From Bugula neritina (lineage: Eukaryota > Animalia > Bryozoa), in NCBI GenBank assembly GCA_964035545.1, contig OZ037768.1, forward strand, positions 11,688,741-11,752,740: a DNA stretch of 64,000 bases. Direction: 5' to 3'. Positions 18,459 to 42,366 of this stretch are shown here, one piece after another (position 1 is the stretch's first letter; the number at the start of each line of letters is the position of its first letter). Under the pieces are notes generated by a model that did not search any database, was not told where the DNA came from, and saw only the letters and a program-made list of their open reading frames with translations. The translations under genes were made by a program, and so were the position numbers.

Positions 18459-18476
18459 ATCCCACTTCTGACACCA
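18459..18476 (-). promoter_or_regulatory. Primer-binding site (tRNA-Leu type)
   Basis: Minus strand reads TGGTGTCAGAAGTGGGAT, 2 nt inside the 5' LTR. This is complementary to a tRNA-Leu 3' end (...ATCCCACTTCTGACACCA). Confidence 0.8.
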
Positions 18477-18478
18477 GT

Positions 18479-19532: not shown

Positions 19533-19558
19533 GAGGTAGGTGCAGTAATGGAGATATT
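19533..19558 (+). repeat. Left TIR
   Basis: 22/26 match to the reverse complement of 35574..35599 and 42341..42366; immediately preceded by TAAAAGAT. Confidence 0.85.
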
Positions 19559-19612
19559 GGAAATCACATATAAAAATTTACTATACAACATTTTCATTTT
19601 CTCCACATTATG

Positions 19613-22600
19613 TTATATATCTACACTTTTGGAGATTTGTTGAAAGTGTTAGACAGAGCCCTATCTGATTATTTTGTTAGATTGTTAGATTGTTGAAAAT
19701 CCAATGCTTTTATATATAAAAAAGTGTTGGAGATTTGTTGAAAGTGTTAGACAGACCCCTATCTGATTATTTTGTTAGATTGTTAGATTGTTGAAAATCC
19801 AATGCTTTTATATATAAAAAAGTGTTGAAGATTTGTTGAAAGTGTTAGACAGAGCCCTATCTGATTATTTTGTTAGATTGTTAGATTGTTGAATATTCAA
19901 TGCTTTTATATATAAAAAAGTGTTGGAGATTTGTTGAAAGTGTTAGACAGAGCCCTATCTGATTATTTTGTTAGATTGTTAGATTGTTGAAAATCCAATG
20001 CTTTTATATATAAAAAAGTGTTGGAGATTTGTTGAAAGTGTTAGACAGAGCCCTATCTGATTATTTTGTTAGATTGTTAGATTGTTGAAAATCCAATGCT
20101 TTTATATATAAAAAAGTGTTGAAGATTTGTTGAAAGTGTTAGACAGAGCCCTATCTGATTATTTTGTTAGATTGTTAGATTGTTGAAAATCCAATGCTTT
20201 TATATATAAAAAAGTGTTGAAGATTTGTTGAAAGTGTTAGACAGAGCCCTATCTGATTATTTTGTTAGATTGTTAGATTGTTGAATATTCAATGCTTTTA
20301 TATATAAAAAAGTGTTGGAGATTTGTTGAAAGTGTTAGACAGAGCCCTATCTGATTATTTTGTTAGATTGTTAGATTGTTGAAAATCCAATGCTTTTATA
20401 TATAAAAAAGTGTTGGAGATTTGTTGAAAGTGTTAGACAGAGCCCTATCTGATTATTTTGTTAGATTGTTAGATTGTTGAAAATCCAATGCTTTTATATA
20501 TAAAAAAGTGTTGAAGATTTGTTGAAAGTGTTAGACAGAGCCCTATCTGATTATTTTGTTAGATTGTTAGATTGTTGAAAATCCAATGCTTTTATATATA
20601 AAAAAGTGTTGGAGATTTGTTGAAAGTGTTAGACAGAGCCCTATCTGATTATTTTGTTAGATTGTTAGATTGTTGAAAATCCAATGCTTTTATATATAAA
20701 AAAGTGTTGAAGATTTGTTGAAAGTGTTAGACAGAGCCCTATCTGATTATTTTGTTAGATTGTTAGATTGTTGAAAATTCAATGCTTTTATATATAAAAA
20801 AGTGTTGGAGATTTGTTGAAAGTGTTAGACAGAGCCCTATCTGATTATTTTGTTAGATTGTTAGATTGTTGAAAATCCAATGCTTTTATATATAAAAAAG
20901 TGTTGGAGATTTGTTGAAAGTGTTAGACAGAGCCCTATCTGATTATTTTGTTAGATTGTTAGATTGTTGAAAATCCAATGCTTTTATATATAAAAAAGTG
21001 TTGGAGATTTGTTGAAAGTGTTAGACAGAGCCCTATCTGATTATTTTGTTAGATTGTTAGATTGTTGAAAATCCAATGCTTTTATATATAAAAAAGTGTT
21101 GAAGATTTGTTGAAAGTGTTAGACAGAGCCCTATCTAATTATTTTGTTAGATTGTTAGATTGTTGAAAATCCAATGCTTTTATATATAAAAAAGTGTTGG
21201 AGATTTGTTGAAAGTGTTAGACAGAGCCCTATCTGATTATTTTGTTAGATTGTTAGATTGTTGAAAATCCAATGCTTTTATATATAAAAAAGTGTTGAAG
21301 ATTTGTTGAAAGTGTTAGACAGAGCCCTATCTGATTATTTTGTTAGATTGTTAGATTGTTGAAAATCCAATGCTTTTATATATAAAAAAGTGTTGGAGAT
21401 TTGTTGAAAGTGTTAGACAGAGCCCTATCTGATTATTTTGTTAGATTGTTAGATTGTTGAAAATCCAATGCTTTTATATATAAAAAAGTGTTGGAGATTT
21501 GTTGAAAGTGTTAGACAGAGCCCTATCTGATTATTTTGTTAGATTGTTAGATTGTTGAAAATCCAATGCTTTTATATATAAAAAAGTGTTGGAGATTTGT
21601 TGAAAGTGTTAGACAGAGCCCTATCTGATTATTTTGTTAGATTGTTAGATTGTTGAAAATCCAATGCTTTTATATATAAAAAAGTGTTGAAGATTTGTTG
21701 AAAGTGTTAGACAGAGCCCTATCTGATTATTTTGTTAGATTGTTAGATTGTTGAAAATCCAATGCTTTTATATATAAAAAAGTGTTGGAGATTTGTTGAA
21801 AGTGTTAAACAGAGCCCTATCTGATTATTTTGTTAGATTGTTAGATTGTTGAAAATCCAATGCTTTTATATATAAAAAAGTGTTGAAGATTTGTTGAAAA
21901 TGTTAGACAGAGCCCTATCTGATTATTTTGTTAGATTGTTAGATTGTTGAAAATCCAATGCTTTTATATATAAAAAAGTGTTGGAGATTTGTTGAAAGTG
22001 TTAGACAGAGCCCTATCTGATTATTTTGTTAGATTGTTAGATTGTTGAAAATCCAATGCTTTTATATATAAAAAAGTGTTGAAGATTTGTTGAAAGTGTT
22101 AGACAGAGCCCTATCTGATTATTTTGTTAGATTGTTAGATTGTTGAAAATTCAATGCTTTTATATATAAAAAAGTGTTGGAGATTTGTTGAAAGTGTTAG
22201 ACAGAGCCCTATCTGATTATTTTGTTAGATTGTTAGATTGTTGAAAATCCAATGCTTTTATATATAAAAAAGTGTTGGAGATTTGTTGAAAGTGTTAGAC
22301 AGAGCCCTATCTGATTATTTTGTTAGATTGTTAGATTGTTGAAAATCCAATGCTTTTATATATAAAAAAGTGTTGAAGATTTGTTGAAAGTGTTAGACAG
22401 AGCCCTATCTGATTATTTTGTTAGATTGTTAGATTGTTGAATATTCAATGCTTTTATATATAAAAAAGTGTTGGAGATTTGTTGAAAGTGTTAGACAGAG
22501 CCCTATCTGATTATTCTGTTAGATTGTTAGATTGTTGAAAATTCAATGCTTTTATATATAAAAAAGTGTTGGAGATTTGTTGAAAGTGTTAGACAGAGCC

Positions 22601-24449
22601 CTATCTGATTATTTTGTTAGATTGTTAGATTGTTGAAAATCCAATGCTTTTATATATAAAAAAGTGTTGAAGATTTGTTGAAAGTGTTAGACAGAGCCCT
22701 ATCTGATTATTTTGTTAGATTGTTAGATTGTTGAAAATTCAATGCTTTTATATATCTACACTTTTGGAGATTTGTTGAAAGTGTTAGACAGAGCCCTATC
22801 TGATTATTTTGTTAGATTGTTAGATTGTTGAAAATCCAATGCTTTTATATATAAAAAAGTGTTGGAGATTTGTTGAAAGTGTTAGACAGAGCCCTATCTG
22901 ATTATTTTGTTAGATTGTTAGATTGTTGAAAATCCAATGCTTTTATATATAAAAAAGTGTTGAAGATTTGTTGAAAGTGTTAGACAGAGCCCTATCTGAT
23001 TATTTTGTTAGATTGTTAGATTGTTGAAAATCCAATGCTTTTATATATAAAAAAGTGTTGAAGATTTGTTGAAAGTGTTAGACAGAGCCCTATCTGATTA
23101 TTTTGTTAGATTGTTAGATTGTTGAAAATTCAATGCTTTTATATATAAAAAAGTGTTGGAGATTTGTTGAAAGTGTTAGACAGAGCCCTATCTGATTATT
23201 TTGTTAGATTGTTAGATTGTTGAAAATCCAATGCTTTTATATATAAAAAAGTGTTGAAGATTTGTTGAAACTGTTAGACAGAGCCCTATCTGATTATTTA
23301 GTTAGATTGTTAGATTGTTGAAAATTCAATGCTTTTATATATCTACACTTTTGGAGATTTGTTGAAAGTGTTAGACAGAGCCCTATCTGATTATTTTGTT
23401 AGATTGTTAGATTGTTGAAAATCCAATGCTTTTATATATAAAAAAGTGTTGAAGATTTGTTGAAAGTGTTAGACAGAGCCCTATCTGAATATTTTGTTAG
23501 ATTGTTAGATTGTTGAAAATTCAATGCTTTTATATATAAAAAAGTGTTGAAGATTTGTTGAAAGTGTTAGACAGTGCCCTATCTGATTATTTTGTTAGAT
23601 TGTTAGATTGTTGAAAATTCAATGCTTTTATATATAAAAAAGTGTTGGAGATTTGTTGAAAGTGTTAGACAGAGCCCTATCTGATTATTTTGTTAGATTG
23701 TTAGATTGTTGAAAATCCAATGCTTTTATATATAAAAAAGTGTTGGAGATTTGTTGAAAGTGTTAGACAGAGCCCTATCTGATTATTTTGTTAGATTGTT
23801 AGATTGTTGAAAATCCAATGCTTTTATATATAAAAAAGTGTTGAAGATTTGTTGAAAGTGTTAGACAGAGCCCTATCTGATTATTTTGTTAGATTGTTAG
23901 ATTGTTGAAAATTCAATGCTTTTATATATAAAAAAGTGTTGGAGATTTGTTGAAAGTGTTAGACAGAGCCCTATCTGATTATTTTGTTAGATTGTTAGAT
24001 GGTTGAAAATCCAATGCTTTTATATATAAAAAAGTGTTGAAGATTTGTTGAAAGTGTTAGACAGAGCCCTATCTGATTATTTTGTTAGATTGTTAGATTG
24101 TTGAAAATCCAATGCTTTTATATATAAAAAAGTGTTGAAGATTTGTTGAAAGTGTTAGGCAGAGCCCTATCTGATTATTTTGTTAGATTGTTAGATTGTT
24201 GAAAATTCAATGCTTTTATATATAAAAAAGTGTTGGAGATTTGTTGAAAGTGTTAGACAGAGCCCTATCTGATTATTTTGTTAGATTGTTAGATTGTTGA
24301 AAATCCAATGCTTTTATATATAAAAAAGTGTTGAAGATTTGTTGAAAGTGTTAGACAGAGCCCTATCAAATTATTTTGTTAGGTTGTTAGATTGTTGGAA
24401 ATTCAATGCTTTTATATATCTACACTTTCAGAGATTTGTTGAAAGTGTT
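19613..24449 (+). repeat. Left subterminal tandem array, 98-bp unit, ~49 copies
   Basis: Period 98 (e.g. 19631, 19729, 19827). Unit GGAGATTTGTTGAAAGTGTTAGACAGAGCCCTATCTGATTATTTTGTTAGATTGTTAGATTGTTGAAAATCCAATGCTTTTATATATAAAAAAGTGTT; near-identical copies with no spacers. Confidence 0.98.
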
Positions 24450-24641
24450 TGTACATTGTTTTTTCCTGCAATGTATTTGTTGAATGCTTCTATGCTGTGA
24501 AGCCGATCATTTCATGCTTCCATTCAATTAAAAATAGTCATAACACTAATTTTTTTGACATTTTGAGCATTTAATAATTTAATTGCTAAAATATAAAAAA
24601 TACATTACTCTAAATAGCATCAATGTAAAACAACTCATCCT

Positions 24642-27442
24642 CTATTTCTTTATAAAATACATGGAGTTTTTTCTTGCTCCTTGTGTTATAGTTCCAAGTC
24701 CTATTTTTTCTGCCGCCATCAAAAAATCCTTGCATTCACTCGCAGTTTTGATTATTTTGTTCTGCTGCAGCGTCCTTGCTGTTATCACCTTCTCTTTTAG
24801 AGCATGCAACCTCTTTGTCGCATTGAGCTCCAAAAATTGTTCTTCGGTCATTGCCCCATAGTAACTGCTATTCTGCAAATTCATAACATATATTTCTTGA
24901 ACAGTCATTGGAAGGTTCCAAAGATGATTTGCTCCACATTTTCAATTGTTTTATATTTTAACAGCAGCTTCGCAACATATATCGTAATTGCTTTGTTCAT
25001 TATTGCAATTTTTTTTCGAAACACCAACCTCTTCAGCCTGTTCACCCTTTCTTTGAGGCATCCCAATGATATTTAATTTCCAACCATCAAGATGCCGCAT
25101 AACTGCAATTGCCTGTGTCATGCTGCTTGCTTGTACAATTCTAGTCCCTGGCACTCCTTCCTCAAGTGCATTGCTTGCCGCTTCCAGCACCATGGCCAAT
25201 CGTAGGACATAACCCTGCATAATTACAATCAAGCAACTATAAGTTTACACAATAAGGTGTTTACAAACATGTATGGATTGAGCTGCATCTATGATACTGA
25301 ATTTCATTAGAAAACAATTCTGGGTAAAAGAGATTCTCACACTTCATATTTTTAAAGCTTGTGACTTTGAGTTATCGTAACATAGTAATATTTGCAAATA
25401 TCTGTAGCGTTTTTTTGGTACATAGGCAATGAAATTTGTAAAAGCTAGCTTATAAAGTTTGTAAATTGCCGAAATTTTACTTACAGAAGATTTATTTACC
25501 AGTCCCAAAGACGGATCAGCTGCTGGGAGGTCAGACGTTTTTGCCTCCATCTCATCAAAATAATGTTCGAACAATGTTCCCGCTTCTGAATTTAGTTTAT
25601 AGAAGTTCTTCTGAAAAAGTGGCCTCACAAATATTAAATACTAAATAATGCAATACATACAATACATTTCAAGTCTCTTAACCAATTAAAATTTATAAAG
25701 ATCCAAATACATAATTTTAATGAAAATGAACTTTTTTACACACGATTCACTTGCATACAACTTATAACTTATCCAGTTTTAAAATCCAGCTACATGCCAA
25801 ACCAGTTACTAGCTATCTTGGCAGATTCAAATACATATAGACTTATACTATTCAGCATATATGCATTACTTAAAATTTTACCTCTGAACAATGGTGATTT
25901 TGAAACACCTTCAAAAAAAGATTGAACAGATCTTTCCCACTCTCCACTCGCTTTCCTATCTCTTGAAACTTTACATGGCGCTTTGTGGTGAAGCATATCA
26001 AATGGCGGTCTAAAAACCCGTCTATATCGCCTCTCTTCATGCGCTGGTTGAGCAGCCGAGGTTGAAGAAAGCCTAGAAGTTATATGAAAGATTTTGTATA
26101 AAGTTTCAACAGGTAAAATATATTATATACCATTGTACAACACTTCTTTTAATAAATAATAGAACAGTAGCCAATAAACTGCAAACTACAAGAAAAGGAA
26201 ATAAAGAAATTTTACATGTACACACTGAACTTTTGTGTACCTGTGTAATTTAATCTTGTTTCTTCTATTTCTTGTAGGCCTTGCTTGCTGTTTCGGGCCC
26301 AGCTCCCACCACCAGATAGTGTTAGCCAAACTCGTCTATCTAGGGAATCTGGTCTTCCCTTATTGTCTAGACATTCGAACAAGCCTTCAATCTCATCCAG
26401 TATATTAAGATAAGTTCCGTTATTGGTGGATAATTGCTCATGCAATTTTGCCATAGTGATTGTTTCATTTGAGCAGAAAAGGCGAGAGAGACATGGCTCA
26501 TTATCTATATATAAAGAAGTTCTATAGTAAATAGCAACAGAAAAATTTTTATCAGTAAAGTGAAAAAACAATGCTTATCTGAAAGAGCAGTTATTTTTTC
26601 CAGCAAAAGTTTAAACTGCAAATATTATGAAACATTGCATAACTACCTTGCGTTGAAAGTCCACTAAAACTTGTTTCAGCTTGTTCATTACACACAGTGT
26701 CTTTCACTCGCTTGAGGGCTGCCAACAGACACTTCAATGCCACTGTTTTTCGAGACCCTTTAGGTAACAGTAAATAAAAAATACTAATAATTTATCCTAA
26801 CATACAAGCGTGGGGGTTTGGGTAAAAAAAGCTCTAATCATGCTAAGCAAAAGACTGATAAATGGTTTTGAATAAAATTCTGTTCTCTTCATAATTTAGG
26901 CATTTTAATAGTCATTAGTTAATAAACATCAACATTCATGATATGTGATTATGATGTTTAACCTGGAGGAGCAGCCACTGCAGACCAAATTATATTTGGT
27001 TCAGTAAAGTTGATCTCATCCCTATGAGTTGAGACAGTAGAAATCCCCATCAATCCAGACACAATTGTGAGAACCGGTAGCAACAGCATCGAGATGTTGA
27101 CAGAGGCTTCTTTTGAAGTATCATCTAATAGCTTTACCAGCGGAGTGTTGGGGAGAACTTCCCATAATGGATCAGGATTTACCTGAAGTAAGTAAAATAT
27201 GGTTTAAATGATAAATTATTAAATAAAAATACAATTGGTCATTTATAATTTCCTAGAAATGTTATTCCTTACCAAGATATAGAAGAATAGTTGTATAAAT
27301 ATAATAATGCAAATCCATAGCTACTAATAACAATTCAAATACTTACATGTTCAGAAGTATCTGTAATAGTAATTTCAGTGCTTTCTACTGACATAGCTTC
27401 ACAGTTGAGATTGGTTATATCAGTATCTGCGTTAGTGTCCAT
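24642..27442 (-). CDS. Spliced DUF3987/YfjI-like P-loop NTPase (putative helicase), ~8 exons, ~480 aa
   Basis: Approximate exons 27442-27347, 27182-26963, 26757-26648, 26504-26241, 26072-25882, 25610-25485, 25213-25029, 24872-24642. They join in phase to give EPNIIWSAVAAPPGSRKT (Walker A-like), LNILDEIEG (Walker B), WLTLSGGGSW, NYTGFLQP, DGFLDRHLI and GYVLRLAMVL. The last intron is inferred, because it skips two in-frame stops. Confidence 0.75.
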
Positions 27443-27521
27443 CCTATTATAATTCTAAGTATAAATACCAAGATGGTGTAGTCTGGATGTAGTCTGTATC
27501 AGGCGAGCTTTACTGCTTTAC

Positions 27522-27912
27522 TGTCTAAACTGACAGCATGACTCTAACAATATTGCAACTACTAAAAATGGTTTTGTCTTATATACTAATCCATTTGATA
27601 AACATCATATTGTGTTGCAAGAAGTATTATTTCACATTTTAGCTATTTTGGGGTAGGATCTCACTATTTCAAAGAAGTGGGCTGAAGTAAACAAACACCG
27701 TGTGACATCACAGCTGATGCAAGCATAACTGCTGACTATGAATCATTCTACATGCGTAGCTACTGTTTTGGGGTAGTAATTAAAGAAGCATTAGGTTGAC
27801 TACTGGCAGCTAGTGGTTATATAGGCTAATTGAAGGTTGATGACATTGTGATTGTGCGTGATGGTACTACGAGTTATAATTCCTGTAAACATCCTATTTC
27901 ATAACATTACAC
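27522..27912 (-). repeat. Internal inverted repeat, left arm (~390 bp; candidate promoter/5' region)
   Basis: Reverse complement of 29275..29660 with a few substitutions and 2-bp indels; ends 80 bp upstream of the NTPase ATG. Confidence 0.92.
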
Positions 27913-28152
27913 TCGACCCTTTAATTTCTATCTATTCACTTAGAGGGAATTAACAATTATATTATTATGCATTTAAGATACTAAGCTAAAATACTAATAT
28001 AGGTATGCATGCAAAGGTTATGGGGTAAATAGGTAAATTAATTTGTGGATAGGCCTATCTAAATATTTGAGTGGAGCTAGTCTCACACCTTTACTGTTCA
28101 ACTCTGTAGTTGCTAGTTGCACTTTTACCTTACGAATTAAGTCATCTCAGTT

Positions 28153-29240
28153 TTATGTGTTTCTATCTTTACTTACACATTTGTCTTTACTTAGCCTGTA
28201 ATATTCATCTGAAAATGACCCTTTTTGTACCCACTGCAGTATAAGATGTTTAGCATCTGTCAAGTCAATAATTGTGAGTCTGGGAGTTATGCTACCTTTA
28301 TGCTTTACCAATCTTTTTCTTTTTGGGGTGATACACGCCAAAGTGGGGAATGTACCACTGATGTTTGCTTGCCTCACAATTTGTAGGTACCAATTCTGCA
28401 TCGCCATTGTTTATTATGTCTGCCATAAATGCCACGTAATCTGTTTCATATTTCTGGTCTTTAAGCATTTTAGTTTTGAGGATATCAAGTCTGTGCACAG
28501 CTATTTGTCTATTGTCTGGTAATTGTGGCTTAGCATTTTTAAATGACAGTGGCATGCTGTAATAATTGTCTTTTCTTTGTTTAATATTGTTGCGCATGTT
28601 ATCTAAAAACTTGGCATCTTCCTGTGACATTTTATGAGTAGCAATGCACTTTGTGTCAGTATAATCTTGCTGTAGGACATTCAAGATATCTGAACTCAAG
28701 TTCTGCTCATGAGCCATAGCCCTATTGCATGTGGGAAATGAGTTTGTTTCATGCTTACCACTATTGCCTACAATACACCATCCTAGAGGTGTTCTCAGAG
28801 CAAAGGGATCATTGATTGCAAGGCCTATTTTAGTTTCAAGTGGCACTAAAGCTCTGGAGCTGTCATACCCTATAAAAATTCATATCTCTATATCTAAACC
28901 TTGTGGTATTTTACCTGCAATGCATTTAAGGTGTGGCCATCTATTGGCAATTTCTGGTGTGGGTATGTGCTGCTTGTTAATTAGAATGCTGTCCGTACTG
29001 TAAGTCTATCCTACTTGTATCTGCTCATGCATGTTCAGTCCTCTAATAGTCAAGTTATTGTACACCTTACACTTCATTTCCAAGTTGTCAGCTGTCATTG
29101 TTGTTAGTTTAAGAGAAACTGGTTTGCTTGTAGCTGTTTATAGCTTACTAACAACTTGGTTGGTTACAAATGCGGTATCTGACATGCTATCTAAAAGTGC
29201 ATAAGTTAGCATTTCCTCAAGATTTACAGCACAACTATAC
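28153..29240 (-). pseudogene. Degenerate BEL/Pao retrotransposon pol fragment
   Basis: TYALLDSMSD (protease), PFALRTPLGWCIVG, YYSMPLSFK..LPDNR, WYIPHFGVYHPKK (RT start), then a jump to a post-RNase H-like segment (LTDAKHLILQWVQ). Contains stops and frameshifts; no LTRs seen. Confidence 0.85.
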
Positions 29241-29274
29241 CAACACTTTATTATCTCTATCTCTTACAAGGAGG

Positions 29275-29660
29275 GTGTAATGTTACGAAATAGGATGTTT
29301 ACAGGAATTATAACTCGTAGTACCATCACGCACAATCACAATGTCATCAACCTTCAATTAGCCTATATAACCACTAGCTGCCAGTAGTCAACCTAATGCT
29401 TCTTTAATTACTACCCCAAAACAGTAGCTACGCATGTAGAATGATTCATAGTCAGCAGTTATGCTTGCATCAGCTGTGATGTCACAGGTGTTTGTTTACT
29501 TCAGCCCACTTCTTTGAAACAGTAAGATCCTACCCCAAAATAGCTAAAATGTGAAACCATACCTCTTACAACGCAATAATGTTTATCAAATGGATTAGTA
29601 TATAAGACAAAACCATTTTTAGTAGTTGCAATATTGTTAGTCATGCTGTCAGTTTAGACA
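29275..29660 (+). repeat. Internal inverted repeat, right arm
   Basis: Reverse complement of 27522..27912. Followed by likely 5'UTR exons (donors at ~29764 and ~30201) of the transposase gene. Confidence 0.92.
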
Positions 29661-29780
29661 ACATTTTTTAAGTTTATGTAAGACTACCAAAGAGTAGCAT
29701 TATTTGAAAGACTGTGCAAAGCCACAGCATCAACATAACAGTAGATTAGGAGAGAGAGAAAAGGTAACAAACTTCTATTT

Positions 29781-29785
<5 letters not shown>

Positions 29786-29823
<38 letters not shown>
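29786..29823. repeat. (TA)19 microsatellite
   Basis: Read directly; it is (TA)20 in the duplicate at 36551..36590. Confidence 0.95.
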
Positions 29824-29827
<4 letters not shown>

Positions 29828-30888: not shown

Positions 30889-33369
30889 ATGCCTCAGTTT
30901 ACCCTGATAGCTGGAATAATGCCATTGTTTGCTTATGCATACTTTGCTGTCCCAGAGGGAACTCCTTTCAGATGGAAGAAAATTACCAGTTACATTAAAG
31001 ACCATTTGGCCAAGATTCAAAGCTATGGAGAGCTTACAAAAATAACTGTGAGTGTTTCTGTTGATTTAGAAACTAGCTTACGACAATATAATTGATTCAC
31101 TAGAAATTTAATAATTTTGTATTTGAAGTTTTTCTAAATATTTTTTGAGAGATGTAATGAAAAAAAAGAAATGTTGTAAATTAACTGAATATCATACACC
31201 GTTGTTAGTAAAATATCATCGCACAACAGTAAATACGATAACTTTGGTTAAATGCTTAGTTTAAAGTAATGAGATATTGGCAGAAACTCTAGGTAATCGC
31301 ATGGCTTCCTGTAGAAAGCTAGTCACATATGGAAATTTTTGAAAACACCCTTTTAATGTTTATGAATTGGATAAGAGGCAATGTGTATTACAAAATAAAA
31401 TGTTTTAAATTTAAAATTAGGTTGGAGCTGGAAAGCATAAAGAGAGTAACTATGAGTGCAGCAGTTTTTACAAAGAAGTGTTCCGGATCATTGGGGAAGA
31501 TAATTTGATGGTGTACAACCTTCCTTTAAAATCTCATATGGTGTTTTTACCAAAAAAGAAGCTATGTTGTGACCAGGTCGGTTAATATTTAAATCATTAA
31601 AAGTATTTCATTAGTGTATATGCGTATCTGGTATTATATATTATGAATAGCTAGCAGAGTTGGGGTAGTTGTAATTGGTTGTAATTAATTACATTTACTA
31701 AAGTAATTGAATGTAATTTGTAATTGATGTATAAGAATTTGATTGTAATTGTAATTAATAAAGAATTGCTAATGTTTTTGAATTTAATGTCATATTTATC
31801 AACCTATTTTTTACTGTTAAGAACAAAGAAGGTTTTCAGTTGTCAAAATTGCCCCAGAAATGAGATTAAATAACATTTAGTACTCTTTTGTTAGGACAAA
31901 TAATCTTGTAATTGTAATTAATTACATTACCATGTAATTGACTCCAACCTTGATAGCTAGAGTAGTAAAAAACCTTTGTACCAGTGTATGTTATCAACTT
32001 TTCACTAATGTAGATTATGAAGATAGACAAAGATCGGCCATCGGAAGTTGTAGTGTATACACGAGATGGTATGTCAACAGCACAAGTGTATCACACTACG
32101 TGCAGCAAATGTAAGACTGCATATTTTCCAACTTATGAAGAAACCAACACCAGCAGAACATTCTACACAACATCAAAGGACGATAAAATTATGATGACAA
32201 GCCGGTCAACAGCCTTTACATTGGATTACCTTAAAGAAGTGCTAGTTGATATTCAACTAGGTCGCAGCTTTGGGGAGCTCTGTGAGCGATACAGTAAGCT
32301 GTATGGCTCAGATGAGTACAGAGGAGAAGTTTTTAAAACCAGACTAGAAGATGTTTATTTTATAGCCCAGCTATTAAAATACTTCAATAACAATGTCAGC
32401 TTCTCAAAAGATAATATAGCTAACCGGCTTGCCATAGATGACGTGTGTGATGAAGCAGCTGAAATAATATTCGCACAGAACAGTAAATGGGCTGCTCACA
32501 ATTGTAAAATAAAAGGTTGCTCAGAGGGATTTGTTATGTGTGATGGCAATGAAAAAATAAACAGAAGAATTTGTGCTGCTCCTAAACAACATTTTAAGTT
32601 AGGGAAGGGAATGCCCAACACTATAGGTTGCTGCCCAAACACACCAACTTTAGGAGGAAAAAACAAATCCTCGTCGGTATATTGCAAAGATCATCAATTT
32701 TTAGATTCAGACATTGTTGACAAACACATCATAGTGACAATTAATGTGCCAGATCAAGCTGTATCATCTAGGATTGTTGATGTGAGTAAAGATGTGGTAA
32801 AGATGCAAGAAGAAGATGAAAATATTGGCTGCAAAAAAACAAAGAATATAACTAGATTTCATCAAAAAACAGCTGGGATTATGGCCATTGTCAAGCCCTG
32901 TGGGATAATCATAGATCATCGGGAGATGTACACTTGTGAATCGGCAAGCCAACTCTTTGTCCAGTTGTTGAAGTTAATAGATGATCATGGAGACAAGTTG
33001 AAATATGTGGGCTATGACAGGGCATGTGAATTTCAGCCATTTGTGGAGCGACTGCATAAGAACGGAAATGCTGGTGCTGCTGAGCTCAGCAAGTTGAAAT
33101 ATCTGGTAGACAGATTTCACATCAGAGGTCATACAAAAGCAGAGTGTGACATTTCCCAAGCCTCATGCAAATACCATCCAGATTTGCCGATCTTCACGGA
33201 AATAAGTGCAGCAAACACAGAATGTGCAGAGCAAACATTCTCCTGGCTAAAGAAGTATAAGCATACCGTTAAATACATGACTGCGGCAAAATTTCGGTTT
33301 TTCCTATACTCAATAATAGAGGACCGGAATACAGAAATCCACCAACAGCAAAAAGGAAAATTTCTTTGA
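30889..33369 (+). CDS. KDZ (Kyakuja-Dileera-Zisupton) transposase, CxC5/CxC6-like, 3 coding exons, ~556 aa
   Basis: Exons 30889-31047, 31421-31576 and 32014-33369, all phase 0. Cys clusters P..LCC..VYTRDG..CSKCKTAYFPTY and HNCKIKGC, then VMCDG, KPCGIII..E..ES, YDRAC, VDRFH..GH...C and NTECAEQTFSWL, which is the KDZ catalytic pattern. No disabling stops. Confidence 0.85.
31655..31952. mobile_element. hAT-type MITE in transposase intron 2
   Basis: 8-bp TSD ATAGCTAG (31647-31654 / 31953-31960). Termini CAGAGTTGGGGT vs reverse complement CAAGGTTGGAGT; internal GTAATT repeats. Confidence 0.8.
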
Positions 33370-33558
33370 AATAACACTTATTTTTATTTCTATATAGTTT
33401 AAATTTTTTTACTTTACCATAATTTTACTTATTATTATCTGAATTCCTTGTGAAAAAAACATAAATGTTAACAATTCTGACAGCTCAACATGTAAAATAT
33501 ATTTAAAACATTGTCTTAACATTTCCAACAAGCAAGTCAACATAATTGAAAATAGCTT

Positions 33559-35439
33559 TGTCTAACACTTTCAACAAATATCTGAAAGTGTTGATATATA
33601 AAAGCATTGAATTTCCAACAATCTAACAATCTAACAAAATAATCAGATAGGGCTCTGTCTAACACTTTCAACAAATCTCCAACACTTTTTTATATATAAA
33701 AGCATTGAATTTTCAACAATCTAACAATCTAACAGAATAATCAGATAGGGCTCTGTCTAACACTTTCAACAAATCTCCAACACTTTTTTATATATAAAAG
33801 CATTGAATTTTCAACAATCTAACAATCTAACAAAATAATCAGATAGGGCTCTGTCTAACACTTTCAACAAATCTCCAACACTTTTTTTATATATAAAGCA
33901 TTGGATTTTCAACAATCTAACAATCTAACAAAATAATCAGATAGGGCTCTGTCTAACACTTTCAACAAATCTCCAAAAGTGTAGATATATAAAAGCATTG
34001 AATTTCCAACAATCTAACAATCTAACAAAATAATCAGATAGGGCTCTGTCTAACACTTTCAACAAATCTTCAACACTTTTTTATATATAAAAGCATTGGA
34101 TTTTCAACAATCTAACAAAATAATCAAATAGGGCTCTGTCTAACACTTTCAACAAATCTCCAACACTTTTTTATATATAAAAGCATTGGATTTTCAACAA
34201 TCTAACAATCTAACAAAATAATCAGATAGGGCTCTGTCTAACACTTTCAACAAATCTCCAACACTTTTTTATATATAAAAGCATTGGATTTTCAACAATC
34301 TAACAATCTAACAAAATAATCAGATAGGGCTCTGTCTAACACTTTCAACAAATCTTCAACACTTTTTTATATATAAAAGCATTGGATTTTCAACAATCTA
34401 ACAATCTAACAAAATAATCAGATAGGGCTCTGTCTAACACTTTCAACAAATCTCCAAAAGTGTAGATATATAAAAGCATTGAATTTTCAACAATCTAACA
34501 AAATAATCAGATAGGGCTCTGTCTAACACTTTCAACAAATCTCCAACACTTTTTTATATATAAAAGCATTGAATTTTCAACAATCTAACAATCTAACAAA
34601 ATAATCAGATAGGGCTCTGTCTAACACTTTCAACAAATCTCCAACACTTTTTTTATATATAAAGCATTGGATTTTCAACAATCTAACAATCTAACAAAAT
34701 AATCAGATAGGGCTCTGTCTAACACTTTCAACAAATCTCCAACACTTTTTTTATATATAAAGCATTGGATTTTCAACAATCTAACAATCTAACAAAATAA
34801 TCAGATAGGGCTCTGTCTAACACTTTCAACAAATCTTCAACACTTTTTTATATATAAAAGCATTGGATTTTCAACAATCTAACAATCTAACAAAATAATC
34901 AGATAGGGCTCTGTCTAACACTTTCAACAAATCTCCAACACTTTTTTATATATAAAAGCATTGAATTTTCAACAATCTAACAATCTAACAAAATAATCAG
35001 ATAGGGCTCTGTCTAACACTTTCAACAAATCTCCAACACTTTTTTATATATAAAAGCATTGAATATTCAACAATCTAACAATCTAACAAAATAATCAGAT
35101 AGGGCTCTGTCTAACACTTTCAACAAATCTCCAAAAGTGTAGATATATAAAAGCATTGAATTTTCAACAATCTAACAATCTAACAAAATAATCAAATAGA
35201 GCTCTGTCTAACACTTTCAACAAATCTCCAACACTTTTTTATATATAAAAGCATTGGATTTTCAACAATCTAACAATCTAACAAAATAATCAGATAGGGC
35301 TCTGTCTAACACTTTCAACAAATCTCCAACACTTTTTTATATATAAAAGCATTGAATTTTCAACAATCTAACAATCTAACAAAATAATCAGATAGGGCTC
35401 TGTCTATCACTTTCAACAAATCTCCAACAATCTAACAAA
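33559..35439 (-). repeat. Right subterminal array 1: inverted 98-bp unit, ~19 copies
   Basis: Reverse complement of the left-array unit; a few units lack one 8-bp CAATCTAA. Confidence 0.97.
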
Positions 35440-35573
35440 TATGATACACTAGTCAGCCCTTGTCTAACAGTTGTATCCATAGCTCTCTACAATTCCAAAT
35501 ATGTTGGTAGGACTCATCTAACACAAGTCAAAAGCTTTCAACAAAAATGCTATTCAGTGAGGAATTTTTAGTC

Positions 35574-35599
35574 AAAATCTCCATTTCTGCACCTAACTG
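35574..35599 (-). repeat. Right TIR, internal copy
   Basis: AAAATCTCCATTTCTGCACCTAACTG, joined directly to TTCAAGTGGC, which is the sequence from 28835. Confidence 0.85.
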
Positions 35600-36545
35600 T
35601 TCAAGTGGCACTAAAGCTCTGGAGCTGTCATACCCTATAAAAATTCATATCTCTATATCTAAACCTTGTGGTATTTTACCTGCAATGCATTTAAGGTGTG
35701 GCCATCTATTGGCAATTTCTGGTGTGGGTATGTGCTGCTTGTTAATTAGAATGCTGTCCGTACTGTAAGTCTATCCTACTTGTATCTGCTCATGCATGTT
35801 CAGTCCTCTAATAGTCAAGTTATTGTACACCTTACACTTCATTTCCAAGTTGTCAGCTGTCATTGTTGTTAGTTTAAGAGAAACTGGTTTGCTTGTAGCT
35901 GTTTATAGCTTACTAACAACTTGGTTGGTTACAAATGCGGTATCTGACATGCTATCTAAAAGTGCATAAGTTAGCATTTCCTCAAGATTTACAGCACAAC
36001 TATACCAACACTTTATTATCTCTATCTCTTACAAGGAGGGTGTAATGTTACGAAATAGGATGTTTACAGGAATTATAACTCGTAGTACCATCACGCACAA
36101 TCACAATGTCATCAACCTTCAATTAGCCTATATAACCACTAGCTGCCAGTAGTCAACCTAATGCTTCTTTAATTACTACCCCAAAACAGTAGCTACGCAT
36201 GTAGAATGATTCATAGTCAGCAGTTATGCTTGCATCAGCTGTGATGTCACAGGTGTTTGTTTACTTCAGCCCACTTCTTTGAAACAGTAAGATCCTACCC
36301 CAAAATAGCTAAAATGTGAAACCATACCTCTTACAACGCAATAATGTTTATCAAATGGATTAGTATATAAGACAAAACCATTTTTAGTAGTTGCAATATT
36401 GTTAGTCATGCTGTCAGTTTAGACAACATTTTTTAAGTTTATGTAAGACTACCAAAGAGTAGCATTATTTGAAAGACTGTGCAAAGCCACAGCATCAACA
36501 TAACAGTAGATTAGGAGAGAGAGAAAAGGTAACAAACTTCTATTT

Positions 36546-36594
<49 letters not shown>

Positions 36595-37655
36595 GATTAC
36601 ATTTTTATACTATAAAGTTTCAATAATATGGACTGTAGTTACATGCTAGGTTGAATTGTTATTTCATGCTGCTATCTACAATTTATGATATACATTGCTA
36701 GTGCCTTTACATACATACTTATTATACTACATACATTTTGTTTGCGTTAATATCATTATGCCTTATGTTGTATCATTATTATTTTAGTTTTTACAGTCAG
36801 TATTTGATCAACATTGGTGATTCAAATAAACTCTGATCACGGCTAAAACCCTCCCTATTCCTAGTCAGGCTGTATAAGCTAGAGTGTCACTCTAAAGCAA
36901 GAATCATAGCAAAGAGTGTCATTCTATAGAGGGAGATCTCTGCCTGATTACATCACATTACGTAGAGGTAGGTTAAGTAAAGGGCAAAATTAGAAACTTA
37001 CCATAAGAAGTCGTTTTCTTAAACCGAATTAGTGAACTTAGGCTATCTCAATTTTTCCACTGATCGTAATGCTCTAAATGTACATGTGAGTATTTGTCTG
37101 TATATATATGTATATACAACAATATTTTTAAAATTAGTATTCACACAAATGTATATTATTTCAAGTTTTTGCATAATGTTTTTTTACTCTAAATGAACTT
37201 CACACCCAAATTTAGTATGAGTTAAAAATACTTAAGCTACCTATCTCAATTATTTTACTGTTGCGCAGCAATATTGCTATATTTTGCTTTCAATCTTAGA
37301 ATTAGGACATGTACATTAAAAGTTTTTACTTGATATTTCAATTGTGCAATTCATTCAATATACTTTTAAAGTTATATATAATTTGCTGGATGTACATCTA
37401 TATTTTTTTATAAGACAAGTTGTTGTATTTCTAGTATAATTAATTGAAATGCATCTGACAAATGTATAGTTGTAGTTGAAGTTTAAAAAAAAATTTGTGA
37501 TCTAATGAAAAAGTTTGTAGTGGTAATAGTTTTCTTTGCCACATATATAAATAGTTCTACAGTATAATCATACGTTACATAACTACTTTCAAAAAGACAC
37601 TTCAACATATTTCTAACTATATGAGTATCATTTTATAGATACTACAAACATTGAC

Positions 37656-40136
37656 ATGCCTCAGTTTACCCTGATAGCTGGAATAATGCCATTGTTTGCT
37701 TATGCATACTTTGCTGTCCCAGAGGGAACTCCTTTCAGATGGAAGAAAATTACCAGTTACATTAAAGACCATTTGGCCAAGATTCAAAGCTATGGAGAGC
37801 TTACAAAAATAACTGTGAGTGTTTCTGTTGATTTAGAAACTAGCTTACGACAATATAATTGATTCACTAGAAATTTAATAATTTTGTATTTGAAGTTTTT
37901 CTAAATATTTTTTGAGAGATGTAATGAAAAAAAAGAAATGTTGTAAATTAACTGAATATCATACACCGTTGTTAGTAAAATATCATCGCACAACAGTAAA
38001 TACGATAACTTTGGTTAAATGCTTAGTTTAAAGTAATGAGATATTGGCAGAAACTCTAGGTAATCGCATGGCTTCCTGTAGAAAGCTAGTCACATATGGA
38101 AATTTTTGAAAACACCCTTTTAATGTTTATGAATTGGATAAGAGGCAATGTGTATTACAAAATAAAATGTTTTAAATTTAAAATTAGGTTGGAGCTGGAA
38201 AGCATAAAGAGAGTAACTATGAGTGCAGCAGTTTTTACAAAGAAGTGTTCCGGATCATTGGGGAAGATAATTTGATGGTGTACAACCTTCCTTTAAAATC
38301 TCATATGGTGTTTTTACCAAAAAAGAAGCTATGTTGTGACCAGGTCGGTTAATATTTAAATCATTAAAAGTATTTCATTAGTGTATATGCGTATCTGGTA
38401 TTATATATTATGAATAGCTAGCAGAGTTGGGGTAGTTGTAATTGGTTGTAATTAATTACATTTACTAAAGTAATTGAATGTAATTTGTAATTGATGTATA
38501 AGAATTTGATTGTAATTGTAATTAATAAAGAATTGCTAATGTTTTTGAATTTAATGTCATATTTATCAACCTATTTTTTACTGTTAAGAACAAAGAAGGT
38601 TTTCAGTTGTCAAAATTGCCCCAGAAATGAGATTAAATAACATTTAGTACTCTTTTGTTAGGACAAATAATCTTGTAATTGTAATTAATTACATTACCAT
38701 GTAATTGACTCCAACCTTGATAGCTAGAGTAGTAAAAAACCTTTGTACCAGTGTATGTTATCAACTTTTCACTAATGTAGATTATGAAGATAGACAAAGA
38801 TCGGCCATCGGAAGTTGTAGTGTATACACGAGATGGTATGTCAACAGCACAAGTGTATCACACTACGTGCAGCAAATGTAAGACTGCATATTTTCCAACT
38901 TATGAAGAAACCAACACCAGCAGAACATTCTACACAACATCAAAGGACGATAAAATTATGATGACAAGCCGGTCAACAGCCTTTACATTGGATTACCTTA
39001 AAGAAGTGCTAGTTGATATTCAACTAGGTCGCAGCTTTGGGGAGCTCTGTGAGCGATACAGTAAGCTGTATGGCTCAGATGAGTACAGAGGAGAAGTTTT
39101 TAAAACCAGACTAGAAGATGTTTATTTTATAGCCCAGCTATTAAAATACTTCAATAACAATGTCAGCTTCTCAAAAGATAATATAGCTAACCGGCTTGCC
39201 ATAGATGACGTGTGTGATGAAGCAGCTGAAATAATATTCGCACAGAACAGTAAATGGGCTGCTCACAATTGTAAAATAAAAGGTTGCTCAGAGGGATTTG
39301 TTATGTGTGATGGCAATGAAAAAATAAACAGAAGAATTTGTGCTGCTCCTAAACAACATTTTAAGTTAGGGAAGGGAATGCCCAACACTATAGGTTGCTG
39401 CCCAAACACACCAACTTTAGGAGGAAAAAACAAATCCTCGTCGGTATATTGCAAAGATCATCAATTTTTAGATTCAGACATTGTTGACAAACACATCATA
39501 GTGACAATTAATGTGCCAGATCAAGCTGTATCATCTAGGATTGTTGATGTGAGTAAAGATGTGGTAAAGATGCAAGAAGAAGATGAAAATATTGGCTGCA
39601 AAAAAACAAAGAATATAACTAGATTTCATCAAAAAACAGCTGGGATTATGGCCATTGTCAAGCCCTGTGGGATAATCATAGATCATCGGGAGATGTACAC
39701 TTGTGAATCGGCAAGCCAACTCTTTGTCCAGTTGTTGAAGTTAATAGATGATCATGGAGACAAGTTGAAATATGTGGGCTATGACAGGGCATGTGAATTT
39801 CAGCCATTTGTGGAGCGACTGCATAAGAACGGAAATGCTGGTGCTGCTGAGCTCAGCAAGTTGAAATATCTGGTAGACAGATTTCACATCAGAGGTCATA
39901 CAAAAGCAGAGTGTGACATTTCCCAAGCCTCATGCAAATACCATCCAGATTTGCCGATCTTCACGGAAATAAGTGCAGCAAACACAGAATGTGCAGAGCA
40001 AACATTCTCCTGGCTAAAGAAGTATAAGCATACCGTTAAATACATGACTGCGGCAAAATTTCGGTTTTTCCTATACTCAATAATAGAGGACCGGAATACA
40101 GAAATCCACCAACAGCAAAAAGGAAAATTTCTTTGA
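37656..40136 (+). CDS. KDZ transposase, second identical copy
   Basis: Exons 37656-37814, 38188-38343 and 38781-40136; protein identical to 30889..33369. Confidence 0.85.
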
Positions 40137-40325
40137 AATAACACTTATTTTTATTTCTATATAGTTTAAATTTTTTTACTTTACCATAATTTTACTTATT
40201 ATTATCTGAATTCCTTGTGAAAAAAACATAAATGTTAACAATTCTGACAGCTCAACATGTAAAATATATTTAAAACATTGTCTTAACATTTCCAACAAGC
40301 AAGTCAACATAATTGAAAATAGCTT

Positions 40326-42206
40326 TGTCTAACACTTTCAACAAATATCTGAAAGTGTTGATATATAAAAGCATTGAATTTCCAACAATCTAACAATCTA
40401 ACAAAATAATCAGATAGGGCTCTGTCTAACACTTTCAACAAATCTCCAACACTTTTTTATATATAAAAGCATTGAATTTTCAACAATCTAACAATCTAAC
40501 AGAATAATCAGATAGGGCTCTGTCTAACACTTTCAACAAATCTCCAACACTTTTTTATATATAAAAGCATTGAATTTTCAACAATCTAACAATCTAACAA
40601 AATAATCAGATAGGGCTCTGTCTAACACTTTCAACAAATCTCCAACACTTTTTTTATATATAAAGCATTGGATTTTCAACAATCTAACAATCTAACAAAA
40701 TAATCAGATAGGGCTCTGTCTAACACTTTCAACAAATCTCCAAAAGTGTAGATATATAAAAGCATTGAATTTCCAACAATCTAACAATCTAACAAAATAA
40801 TCAGATAGGGCTCTGTCTAACACTTTCAACAAATCTTCAACACTTTTTTATATATAAAAGCATTGGATTTTCAACAATCTAACAAAATAATCAAATAGGG
40901 CTCTGTCTAACACTTTCAACAAATCTCCAACACTTTTTTATATATAAAAGCATTGGATTTTCAACAATCTAACAATCTAACAAAATAATCAGATAGGGCT
41001 CTGTCTAACACTTTCAACAAATCTCCAACACTTTTTTATATATAAAAGCATTGGATTTTCAACAATCTAACAATCTAACAAAATAATCAGATAGGGCTCT
41101 GTCTAACACTTTCAACAAATCTTCAACACTTTTTTATATATAAAAGCATTGGATTTTCAACAATCTAACAATCTAACAAAATAATCAGATAGGGCTCTGT
41201 CTAACACTTTCAACAAATCTCCAAAAGTGTAGATATATAAAAGCATTGAATTTTCAACAATCTAACAAAATAATCAGATAGGGCTCTGTCTAACACTTTC
41301 AACAAATCTCCAACACTTTTTTATATATAAAAGCATTGAATTTTCAACAATCTAACAATCTAACAAAATAATCAGATAGGGCTCTGTCTAACACTTTCAA
41401 CAAATCTCCAACACTTTTTTTATATATAAAGCATTGGATTTTCAACAATCTAACAATCTAACAAAATAATCAGATAGGGCTCTGTCTAACACTTTCAACA
41501 AATCTCCAACACTTTTTTTATATATAAAGCATTGGATTTTCAACAATCTAACAATCTAACAAAATAATCAGATAGGGCTCTGTCTAACACTTTCAACAAA
41601 TCTTCAACACTTTTTTATATATAAAAGCATTGGATTTTCAACAATCTAACAATCTAACAAAATAATCAGATAGGGCTCTGTCTAACACTTTCAACAAATC
41701 TCCAACACTTTTTTATATATAAAAGCATTGAATTTTCAACAATCTAACAATCTAACAAAATAATCAGATAGGGCTCTGTCTAACACTTTCAACAAATCTC
41801 CAACACTTTTTTATATATAAAAGCATTGAATATTCAACAATCTAACAATCTAACAAAATAATCAGATAGGGCTCTGTCTAACACTTTCAACAAATCTCCA
41901 AAAGTGTAGATATATAAAAGCATTGAATTTTCAACAATCTAACAATCTAACAAAATAATCAAATAGAGCTCTGTCTAACACTTTCAACAAATCTCCAACA
42001 CTTTTTTATATATAAAAGCATTGGATTTTCAACAATCTAACAATCTAACAAAATAATCAGATAGGGCTCTGTCTAACACTTTCAACAAATCTCCAACACT
42101 TTTTTATATATAAAAGCATTGAATTTTCAACAATCTAACAATCTAACAAAATAATCAGATAGGGCTCTGTCTATCACTTTCAACAAATCTCCAACAATCT
42201 AACAAA
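40326..42206 (-). repeat. Right subterminal array 2 (duplicate), ~19 x 98 bp
   Basis: Copy of 33559..35439. Confidence 0.97.
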
Positions 42207-42340
42207 TATGATACACTAGTCAGCCCTTGTCTAACAGTTGTATCCATAGCTCTCTACAATTCCAAATATGTTGGTAGGACTCATCTAACACAAGTCAAAA
42301 GCTTTCAACAAAAATGCTATTCAGTGAGGAATTTTTAGTC

Positions 42341-42366
42341 AAAATCTCCATTTCTGCACCTAACTG
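42341..42366 (-). repeat. Right TIR (outer)
   Basis: Followed by the TSD TAAAAGAT at 42367-42374. Confidence 0.87.

Follow-up and report, generated by a model that had tools for sequence, protein, structure and literature searches.

The 64,000 nucleotides of Bugula neritina DNA analysed here (the window) contain a real and very young transposon of a known superfamily, KDZ, in which the transposase gene lies beside a gene for an ATPase assigned to the DUF3987 (MCM-like) family. With high confidence, this stretch is best explained as a single copy of an autonomous KDZ-superfamily DNA transposon that is young and probably still active. The copy ends exactly at positions 19533 and 42366 and is 22.8 kb long, including a tandem duplication that is specific to it.

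The left terminal inverted repeat (TIR; 19533-19558, + strand) and the right end have 22 of 26 bases in common in an ungapped alignment, and the repeat contains the core GGTGCAG. The outer right TIR (42341-42366) lies within the second copy of the duplicated segment. Both ends are flanked by the 8-bp target site duplication (TSD) TAAAAGAT, at 19525-19532 and 42367-42374. In 26 genomic matches, homology begins exactly at base 19533. The initial annotation of the sequence, in which 26-bp TIRs and an 8-bp TSD enclose the satellites and both genes, is thus borne out. Its alternative reading of the TSD as 9 bp is unsupported, because other copies of the transposon have a different base at the ninth position. 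The right 6.77 kb being duplicated, the core extends from 19533 to 35599 and has the previously proposed length of 16,067 bp.

At least six further copies with the same termini are present in the B. neritina genome. Each has its own 8-bp TSD (CTATGTCT, TAAATATT, CATTTTTA, CATCAGAC, TGATTGAG and GCTCAATC), and, as predicted, the TSDs differ from copy to copy, with seven distinct sequences in seven copies, TAAAAGAT included. Seven copies with TIRs and different TSDs mark the family as a mobile unit of the kind known from the KDZ superfamily. The full copies are mutually collinear, and the family unit measures roughly 15-17 kb. The unique 9.1 kb of the copy in the window has about 6 differences per 9,100 bases from the copy at C5:10983288-11000354 and about 40 from the copy on C8. 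The frame of the ATPase gene (gene A) is open in every full copy, and the genome contains four intact copies of the KDZ-domain gene. Helicase-only and array-only derivatives also exist. One of the latter, an 11.8-kb copy on C2, has TSDs and so has moved without carrying the ATPase gene. An uninterrupted allele or haplotig of the insertion site, proposed earlier as a check, was not found in the assembly, where the left flank is single-copy, so that current activity is argued from near-identity and expression only. A recently active, autonomous-looking KDZ transposon is supported by the ends, the TSDs, the near-identical copies, and the splicing and transcription of both genes.

The segment 35600-42366 (+ strand) is a tandem second copy of 28835-35599 and comprises a retrotransposon interior piece, a solo long terminal repeat (LTR), the KDZ gene, a satellite array and a TIR. 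The two segments are 99.97% identical and differ by a single AT microsatellite unit. At the junction, the last base of the right TIR of the core (35574-35599, - strand) is joined to the unique internal position 28835. The duplication is absent from the other copies. It is unlikely, although the region is repeat-rich, that the duplication is an artefact of assembly. The halves are identical except for the one AT unit, the region ends in satellite arrays that are prone to confuse assemblers, and the duplication is known from the assembly alone and in one copy only. However, a TIR tip joined to a unique position fits cleavage by a transposase rather than the collapse or expansion of an array, and the full 22.8 kb is bracketed by an intact outer TSD. 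A genuine duplication would have a transposase-made junction, created most simply by sister-chromatid (alternative) transposition into the transposon itself.

Inside the TIRs lie inverted, kilobase-scale arrays of a 98-bp unit, as described previously. The left array (19629-24449, + strand) has 49.2 copies with 97% matches, and the right array (33555-35429, - strand) has 19.3 copies with a higher-order period of 481 bp and is repeated at 40322-42196 in the duplicate. The stop codons of gene A and the KDZ gene are 192 bp and 185 bp, respectively, from the arrays, in agreement with the earlier estimate of about 190 bp. The 98-bp unit is found only within copies of this transposon family, and copies differ in array length, with a range of roughly 4 to 110 units. 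The possibility that the arrays are multiplied TIR-like binding sites was considered and rejected. The TIR and the 98-bp unit have only the 7-mer TGGAGAT in common, and their local alignment score was equalled in 295 of 2000 shuffles. This similarity is not above chance and thus lends no support to the idea that the transposase binds the arrays.

Foldback-type and other DNA transposons, among them Drosophila FB, Tetris and the CACTA elements with their subterminal repeats, have long inverted ends composed of tandem repeats. The B. neritina family resembles them in that its inverted terminal regions consist of tandem repeats whose number varies between copies, in its array-only derivatives and in being a transposable source of satellite DNA. 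It differs in the superfamily of its transposase, in the position of the arrays inside short unique TIRs and in the inequality of the two sides (49 versus 19 units).

The KDZ transposase gene (30163-33369, + strand) begins with an exon that ends at position 30200, 38 nt beyond the solo LTR. This exon is followed by an intron (30201-30871, GT..AG) and by exon 2, which starts at 30872 and contains an ATG at 30889. The last exon carries a 450-aa open reading frame (ORF; 32017-33369, stop codon at 33367-33369) with the CxC5 and KDZ domains, and the ORF of a second intact gene is located in the duplicate (38784-40136, + strand). Both domains exceed their Pfam cut-offs: KDZ (PF18758, residues 268-438) with 37.3 bits against 26.6 (E 3e-9), and CxC5 (PF18718) with 39.7 bits against 26.9 (E 6e-10). 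The transposase motifs therefore fit the KDZ group, as was first suggested. The invariant Cys and His columns are retained, as are all residues that are invariant in the transposase family. The top matches of the protein model in the PDB are DDE transposases and integrases, at a weak E-value of 9e-3. Homology to the N-terminal exons amounts to a single weak match (30925-30999, E 0.012), and no conserved coding block was found upstream by tblastx. The complete transposase is probably about 580-600 aa long; its relatives have 450-650 aa. Neither CxC4 nor SWIM was detected in a Pfam scan of separate exons, CxC5 being the only such cluster. The gene does not have the structure of Zisupton proper, which combines CxC4, SWIM and KDZ in about 1,300-1,400 aa.

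Gene A (24642-27534, - strand) has eight exons and encodes 474 aa in an open frame from the ATG at 27442 to the stop codon at 24642-24644. The exons are located at 27343 to 27442 and beyond, 26962-27178, 26647-26756, 26240-26504, 25882-26071, 25485-25610, 25029-25214 and 24642-24872. The seven introns are of the GT..AG type, and spliced joints are present in RNA contigs from four studies. Both genes are transcribed and spliced. The RNA evidence consists of assembled contigs, which do not define transcript starts; several are only 90-97% identical, and some may stem from other copies.

The putative partner NTPase of the earlier description appears, through transitive homology, to be of the DUF3987 type. 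When the genome, translated in six frames, was searched directly against Pfam, no DUF3987 match emerged, the exons being too divergent and too short for it, and single exons of gene A, searched separately, match DUF3987 (PF13148) only at E 0.004-0.03. Homologues of the exons belong to DUF3987 at E 1e-25 to 1e-30. Exon 4 matches two of these proteins, P0099 and P0120 (E 2e-25 and 8e-30, respectively), and exons 2 to 7 are collinear with P0120, a protein of 483 aa. By this sequence homology the product of gene A is assigned to the DUF3987 family of ATPases. Its Walker A motif, PPGSRKT, is deviant but is kept across the family, and the motif LDEIE is present. Across 31 homologues, the equivalent columns G84, K87, T88, D150 and E151 show little or no variation. 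The MCM-like AAA+ fold is predicted from the full-length homologue P0120, not from gene A itself. The AlphaFold2 model of P0120 has a pLDDT of 88.5, and its top Foldseek matches are MCM subunits with a probability of 1.0. A sequence search of the PDB with the helicase homologue returned nothing.

Proteins of the DUF3987 family are SF6/MCM-like (PMC4889955, PMC11724360), and a bacterial member has proven 5'-3' helicase activity (PMC11724360). Gene A is related to the DUF3987 helicases of phages and integrative elements, such as AgaPH (PMC11724360; PMC4889955), through transitive membership of the same Pfam family and through its Walker A and B motifs; the modelled homologue also shares the MCM-like fold and a winged-helix-like C-terminal end. 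However, these helicases team with primases as replicative helicases, whereas the neighbor of gene A is a transposase and no primase is present.

The region between the two genes was originally interpreted as a pair of mirrored promoters, an intrinsic part of a symmetric design. This is not the case. The two arms, at 27522-27912 and 29275-29660, have a complementarity of 96.7%, but they are pieces of an unrelated LTR retrotransposon. The left arm (27522-27912, - strand) comes from a truncated LTR, of which it represents the first 391 bp, and its sense strand faces gene A. It is followed by 1.3 kb of retrotransposon interior (27913-29219, - strand), which is 95-97% identical to copies elsewhere and ends where the RNA contigs of the retrotransposon family diverge (29219). 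The right arm belongs to a complete solo LTR of about 886 bp (29276-30161, + strand), which contains an (AT)20 run, faces the KDZ gene with its sense strand and has its own 5-bp TSD, GAGGG (29271-29275 and 30162-30166). The interior piece contains a 182-aa pol-like ORF (28298-28846), which gave no Pfam match when the BEL/Pao clade, with its Pao-type protease, RT and integrase domains, was considered for the retrotransposon; its neighbors in the Atlas are unnamed animal clusters, and the nearest named ones, DUF1758 and RVT_1, score only 0.80-0.82. An opposite-strand RNA joint (27521/29674) could have indicated flip-flop inversion of the spacer, but it is explained by full-length LTR contigs of the retrotransposon. 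Two nested insertions in the copy at C5:8701702-8720832 are other young LTR elements, with LTR pairs that are 100% and 99.8% identical; they were considered as members of the arm LTR family and rejected, being without similarity to it.

That the 390-bp inverted arms are nevertheless an intrinsic promoter pair of the transposon is highly improbable. They do lie upstream of both genes and point outward, the mRNA contig of gene A extends to 27534 and so overlaps the left LTR piece by 13 nt, and every full copy in the B. neritina genome has them. At no fewer than 15 further loci, however, the same sequence forms direct LTR pairs with copies 4.4-7.3 kb apart, the spacer matches the interior of the same retrotransposon family, the right arm is a solo LTR with a TSD of its own, and the relatives L076, L077, L078 and L082 carry the gene pair without arms. 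As the arms are LTR pieces, much of the quasi-palindrome is the remnant of a nested insertion; of the mirror symmetry noted at the outset, the TIRs, the inverted arrays, the outward-directed genes and the arms themselves are present. In this host lineage the intergenic region received insertions from the retrotransposon family, and the outward-facing LTR remnants may secondarily drive gene A and the KDZ gene, probably by supplying or boosting their promoters.

Other invertebrates had been suggested earlier as a place to look for the same divergent gene pair between inverted arrays. The pair is divergent in relatives from other assemblies (L076, L077, L078/L079, L080 and L082). Their transposases are only 35-38% identical to that of B. 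neritina, but they share the TIR core GGTGCAG, the 8-bp TSDs (measured in L077, L078 and L082) and the subterminal arrays. The two-gene architecture is therefore conserved, and the pairing persists in at least six assemblies. In the closest relatives (L071-L075, 51-53% identical) the two genes are in tandem and not divergent, which means that the gene order is not fixed.

The transposase, with its CxC5 zinc cluster and RNase-H-like KDZ domain, would recognize the 26-bp TIRs and insert the transposon through 8-bp staggered cuts. The layout, in which a DUF3987/MCM-like ATPase gene and a KDZ gene on opposite strands are enclosed on each side by an array and, outside it, a TIR, has been kept in relatives with transposases of about 35% identity, which argues that the ATPase is a functional partner and not a passenger. 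By analogy, it could be an ATP-driven DNA-handling factor that serves in unwinding, in target selection or loading, or in a copying step. It is quite improbable that gene A was captured from a phage or virus and has no role in transposition. Such cargo has precedents, as fungal KDZ elements carry unrelated TET/JBP genes and ORFs without an assigned function (PMC12730594; bioRxiv 10.1101/2024.08.15.608186); furthermore, gene orientation varies between lineages, and the array-only copy on C2 was mobile without the gene. A non-autonomous copy can, however, rely on proteins supplied in trans, and a passenger would hardly accord with a pairing that has outlasted such divergence of the transposase, with exons that are 35-58% identical at the amino acid level between relatives whose introns cannot be aligned, with the near-invariant ATPase motif columns or with a frame intact in all full copies.

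Such a functional partnership would have parallels in bacteria. In Mu (MuA/MuB), Tn7 (TnsB/TnsC) and IS21 (IstA/IstB), an RNase-H-fold transposase is accompanied by an AAA+ ATPase with an essential or regulatory role in transposition. The B. neritina transposon likewise encodes the two side by side. Unlike the bacterial partners, gene A is on the DUF3987/MCM-like branch and has introns and a eukaryotic host. It is the general view that eukaryotic DDE-type cut-and-paste transposons require nothing beyond their transposase, AAA+ partners being a hallmark of bacterial systems. A tentative proposal is that these KDZ transposons form a widespread lineage in animals and require an MCM-like (SF6) helicase of their own, either as a eukaryotic counterpart of the Mu, Tn7 and IS21 systems or as a DDE transposon with helicase-assisted copying, and that its subterminal arrays are binding platforms that seed satellite DNA.

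Zisupton was reportedly described by Bohne et al. in 2012. TSDs are 8 bp in Zisupton and Dileera and 7 bp in Kyakuja (PMC12730594). The B. neritina transposon resembles Zisupton and Dileera in its KDZ domain with an N-terminal CxC cluster, its TIRs, 8-bp TSDs and multi-exon genes, and its animal host. It differs from Zisupton in having a short transposase (probably about 580-600 aa versus up to 1,400 aa) with CxC5 and no detected CxC4 or SWIM domain, and from both in its MCM-like helicase partner gene and kilobase-scale subterminal arrays. The fungal Cryptococcus elements KDZ1-3 and KDZx1 are 6.4-10.9 kb long, contain extra ORFs and are experimentally mobile. Together with the Kyakuja, Dileera and Zisupton elements that carry TET/JBP genes, they share large size, extra ORFs, TIRs and TSDs with the transposon described here. 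However, the accessory genes of the fungal elements are TET/JBP dioxygenases or ORFs without domains, not DUF3987, their CxC types are different, and the fungal accounts compared here report no subterminal satellite arrays. The initial claim that there is no earlier description of such an architecture is therefore too broad for giant multi-gene KDZ elements, which are known in fungi, as are KDZ elements and 8-bp TSDs in general. As regards the pairing of a KDZ transposase with a DUF3987 helicase, no description was found in the searchable literature.

Annotation pipelines would break the transposon up and list a satellite, pieces of LTR and a pair of 'host' genes separately. The family illustrates how a transposon generates satellite DNA, through arrays of variable length and an array-only mobile derivative, and how nested LTRs can persist as outward-facing regulatory modules. 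A phage-type helicase family can be traced into animal genomes through a KDZ transposon. That an expressed, conserved MCM-like helicase gene and a KDZ transposase travel together in distant lineages of animals suggests a mode of transposition that is still unstudied.

The KDZ-superfamily transposon occupies positions 19533 to 42366, and the window sequence carries a copy of TAAAAGAT on each side of it. Its two termini are identical at 22 of 26 positions without gaps. The terminal inverted repeats (TIRs) and the 8-bp target-site duplication (TSD) proposed in the initial annotation are thus borne out; its alternative reading of a 9-bp TSD is not, because the ninth base differs among other copies. 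Self-comparison of the window revealed that 28835-35599 recurs head to tail at 35600-42366, differing only by a single AT unit within a microsatellite. This makes 19533-35599 the basic unit, and the 16,067-bp core described earlier is recovered once the tandem repeat is set aside. The left 98-bp array (19629-24449) contains 49.2 copies of its unit, and the inverted right array (33555-35429) and its duplicate (40322-42196, also inverted) contain 19.3 copies each. A search of the host genome found no 98-bp unit outside copies of this KDZ family. The gap between stop codon and array is 192 bp for gene A, which is on the minus strand, and 185 bp for the plus-strand KDZ gene, in keeping with the reported spacing of about 190 bp. 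The original observation is confirmed as a whole.

An assembly error is a less probable origin of the duplication of 28835-35599. At its junction the right TIR's final base (35599) adjoins an internal base, 28835, which lies within retrotransposon interior, and the outer TSD surrounds the entire duplicated structure. Maize Ac undergoes alternative transposition, in which the insertion of a sister-chromatid end is expected to give a junction like the one seen here. The duplication would then have arisen when the right end carried by one sister chromatid integrated within the element on its sister. Other repeats in the window include a minisatellite at 54059-54604 (26 copies of a 21-bp unit, 98% matches) and a dispersed direct repeat of 780 bp (10491-11269 and 57171-57950, 97.8%). 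Two direct copies of a 316-bp sequence (15433-15747 and 18470-18785, 99.4%), separated by 3 kb, may represent LTRs of a small element immediately to the left of the insertion.

The element ends were used to search the host assembly (216 Mb, eukaryotic), in which the window is G000:C4:11688741-11752740. The search gave 26 matches to the first 100 bases, most of them beginning at the identical first base, and at least 40 to the last 150 bases. Pairing of left-end with right-end matches located six other copies, full or derived, each with its own, different 8-bp TSD, as had been anticipated. An empty allele of the window insertion, also sought, is not present in the host assembly. Two copies, C5:10983288-11000354 (17,067 bp, TSD CTATGTCT) and C8:6195058-6210418 (15,361 bp, TAAATATT), are collinear with the core along its entire length; in the unique 9.1 kb (24450-33554) they diverge from the window by about 6 and about 40 bases, respectively. 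The copy at C5:8701702-8720832 (19,131 bp, CATTTTTA) diverges there by about 1% and holds two nested young LTR retrotransposons of 4,734 and 4,290 bp, whose LTR pairs show 100% and 99.8% identity. The retrotransposon-derived spacer harbours one of these two elements, and the other interrupts the KDZ ORF. Two copies, C4:16747097-16752113 (5,017 bp, TGATTGAG) and C3:3889854-3894180 (GCTCAATC), retain gene A without the transposase. The copy at C2:21862097-21873874 (11,778 bp, CATCAGAC) consists of arrays only, in which the 98-bp unit fills about 10.7 kb (about 110 units) and a further stretch of about 0.9 kb in inverted orientation. Gene-free, with both termini and a TSD, it is a mobile 'satellite'. 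The stretch is a recently active KDZ element with two genes and subterminal arrays, and the initial annotation was right on the essentials.

Shorter and more distant relatives also occur in the host genome. MITE-like elements of about 300 bp carry the family's first ~59 bp and last ~150 bp (paired end matches L010/L044, L013/L040, L014/L055 and L020/L047; e.g. G000:C6:13463832-13464128). Because the flanking sequences resemble one another between copies, these elements lie within another, larger repeat that was amplified afterwards. A 12.4-kb unit at G000:C9:1603690-1616133 has termini related at 86-90% and other tandem arrays, with units of 212 bp and 109 bp; no KDZ or helicase gene was found in it, and it is probably a non-autonomous relative.

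The KDZ identification holds. A 450-aa ORF (32017-33369) has Pfam CxC5 and KDZ matches above the cut-offs and retains all invariant columns in an alignment of 29 proteins. Its AF2 model (pLDDT 80) has only weak matches in the PDB, all to RNase-H-fold transposases or integrases, the best being the ISCth4 transposase (E 9e-3). RNA contigs stop at 30200 and resume with letters just before the ATG at 30889, which places a GT..AG intron at 30201-30871. A 601-aa relative matches 30925-30999 weakly, compatible with a start at 30889.

Gene A has seven joints in RNA contigs from runs of four studies, where CT..AC on the plus strand corresponds to GT..AG introns. With these junctions its coding sequence of 1,425 nt (474 aa) is open from 27442 to 24642; the exons were joined only for this frame check, and homology searches were run exon by exon. 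Exon 4 matched 59 proteins with HMMER, the longer ones being DUF3987 (E 1e-25 to 1e-30), and exons 2, 3, 4, 5 and 7 align in order on a 483-aa DUF3987 protein, P0120. These homologies agree with the NTPase partner of the initial annotation, which listed DUF3987 among the domains to check. The best structural matches of a P0120 model built with 30 homologues (pLDDT 88.5) are MCM subunits (probability 1.0, TM 0.35-0.40). In the Walker A motif of gene A, PPGSRKT, the glycine that normally precedes the lysine is missing, as in all its relatives. MCM proteins are not known to have this glycine either. DUF3987 has been classed among divergent SF6, MCM-related phage replicative helicases (PMC4889955), and 5'-3' helicase activity has been demonstrated for one PriCT-DUF3987 protein (PMC11724360).

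The arms between the two genes (27522-27912 and 29275-29660) had been taken for intrinsic mirrored promoters. That interpretation is wrong. The left arm has at least 40 genome matches, typically paired direct copies 4.4-7.3 kb apart, and sequence beside one arm-like copy elsewhere matches the spacer (27913-29219) at 95-97% identity. Extended queries gave an LTR length of about 870-890 bp for this retrotransposon family. The right arm belongs to a complete LTR (29276-30161, including an (AT)20 run) with GAGGG at both sides, which marks it as a solo LTR that inserted separately. The left arm retains no more than the initial 391 bp of an LTR, accompanied by 1.3 kb of retrotransposon interior. The nested LTR elements of C5:8701702-8720832 were considered as members of the same family and rejected, as neither is related. 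The arms are indeed complementary, at 96.7% in the self-comparison, but nested LTR insertions, together with a duplication specific to this copy, account in part for the 'palindrome'. A purine-rich run adjoins the LTR start (TGTAATG...), and the minus strand carries a pol-like ORF, so the left piece would read toward gene A and the solo LTR toward the KDZ gene. This outward orientation is held with medium confidence, because the pol-like ORF in the spacer has no Pfam match. Use of the LTRs as promoters for the two genes is plausible, since one gene A mRNA contig reaches 27534, within the left LTR piece, and KDZ exon 1 ends 38 nt past the solo LTR. The arms are absent from relatives in other assemblies. 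At one of these, the distant relative L080, a Ty1/copia-type gag/pol fragment unrelated to the arms (7411-8592) separates the helicase gene from the KDZ gene; it is a second, independent instance of a retroelement occupying this intergenic position.

Relatives of the KDZ ORF at 31-57% identity occur in many assemblies, Clytia hemisphaerica included. The divergent pair, a DUF3987 gene upstream of a KDZ gene on the opposite strand, had been proposed as something to look for elsewhere, and was found at L076 (NCBI GCA_029782575.1) and in ENA assemblies at L077, L078/L079, L080 and L082. The L076-L082 transposases are 35-38% identical to that of the window, and the neighbour genes at L077, L078/L079, L080 and L082 encode Ig or NACHT-LRR domains. 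L077, L078 and L082 share a left end, GAG-NNN-GGTGCAGT...TGG, with a near-complement at the right and the same core as the window element, and have tandem arrays of 126-139 bp directly inside it; right-end arrays are also present in L077 and L078. The 8-bp TSDs of L082 (CTCTTGGT) and L078 (GAAGAAAG) are clear. L077 has a 10-bp direct repeat, GTGAACAGTC, which is shifted by 2 bp at the left end, with GAACAGTC as one 8-bp reading. In the closest relatives, L071-L075 from ENA metagenome assemblies (KDZ 51-53% identical), the KDZ gene is followed on the same strand, after 2.5-5 kb, by the helicase gene, which implies that one of the two genes was inverted in that lineage. The L072 contig ends within a 113-bp tandem array. 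Several further contigs, recognized by a length common to the matches of both proteins, putatively hold KDZ and DUF3987 together. The two-gene architecture is conserved in other assemblies.

Among known KDZ elements, Zisupton and Dileera have TIRs and 8-bp TSDs (PMC12730594); Zisupton is multi-exonic and present in animals (PMC9297572). In fungi, experiments have shown the mobility of 6-11 kb KDZ elements that carry additional ORFs (bioRxiv 10.1101/2024.08.15.608186). In the searchable literature DUF3987 is found in prokaryotic or viral contexts only, and none of it links DUF3987 to eukaryotic transposons.
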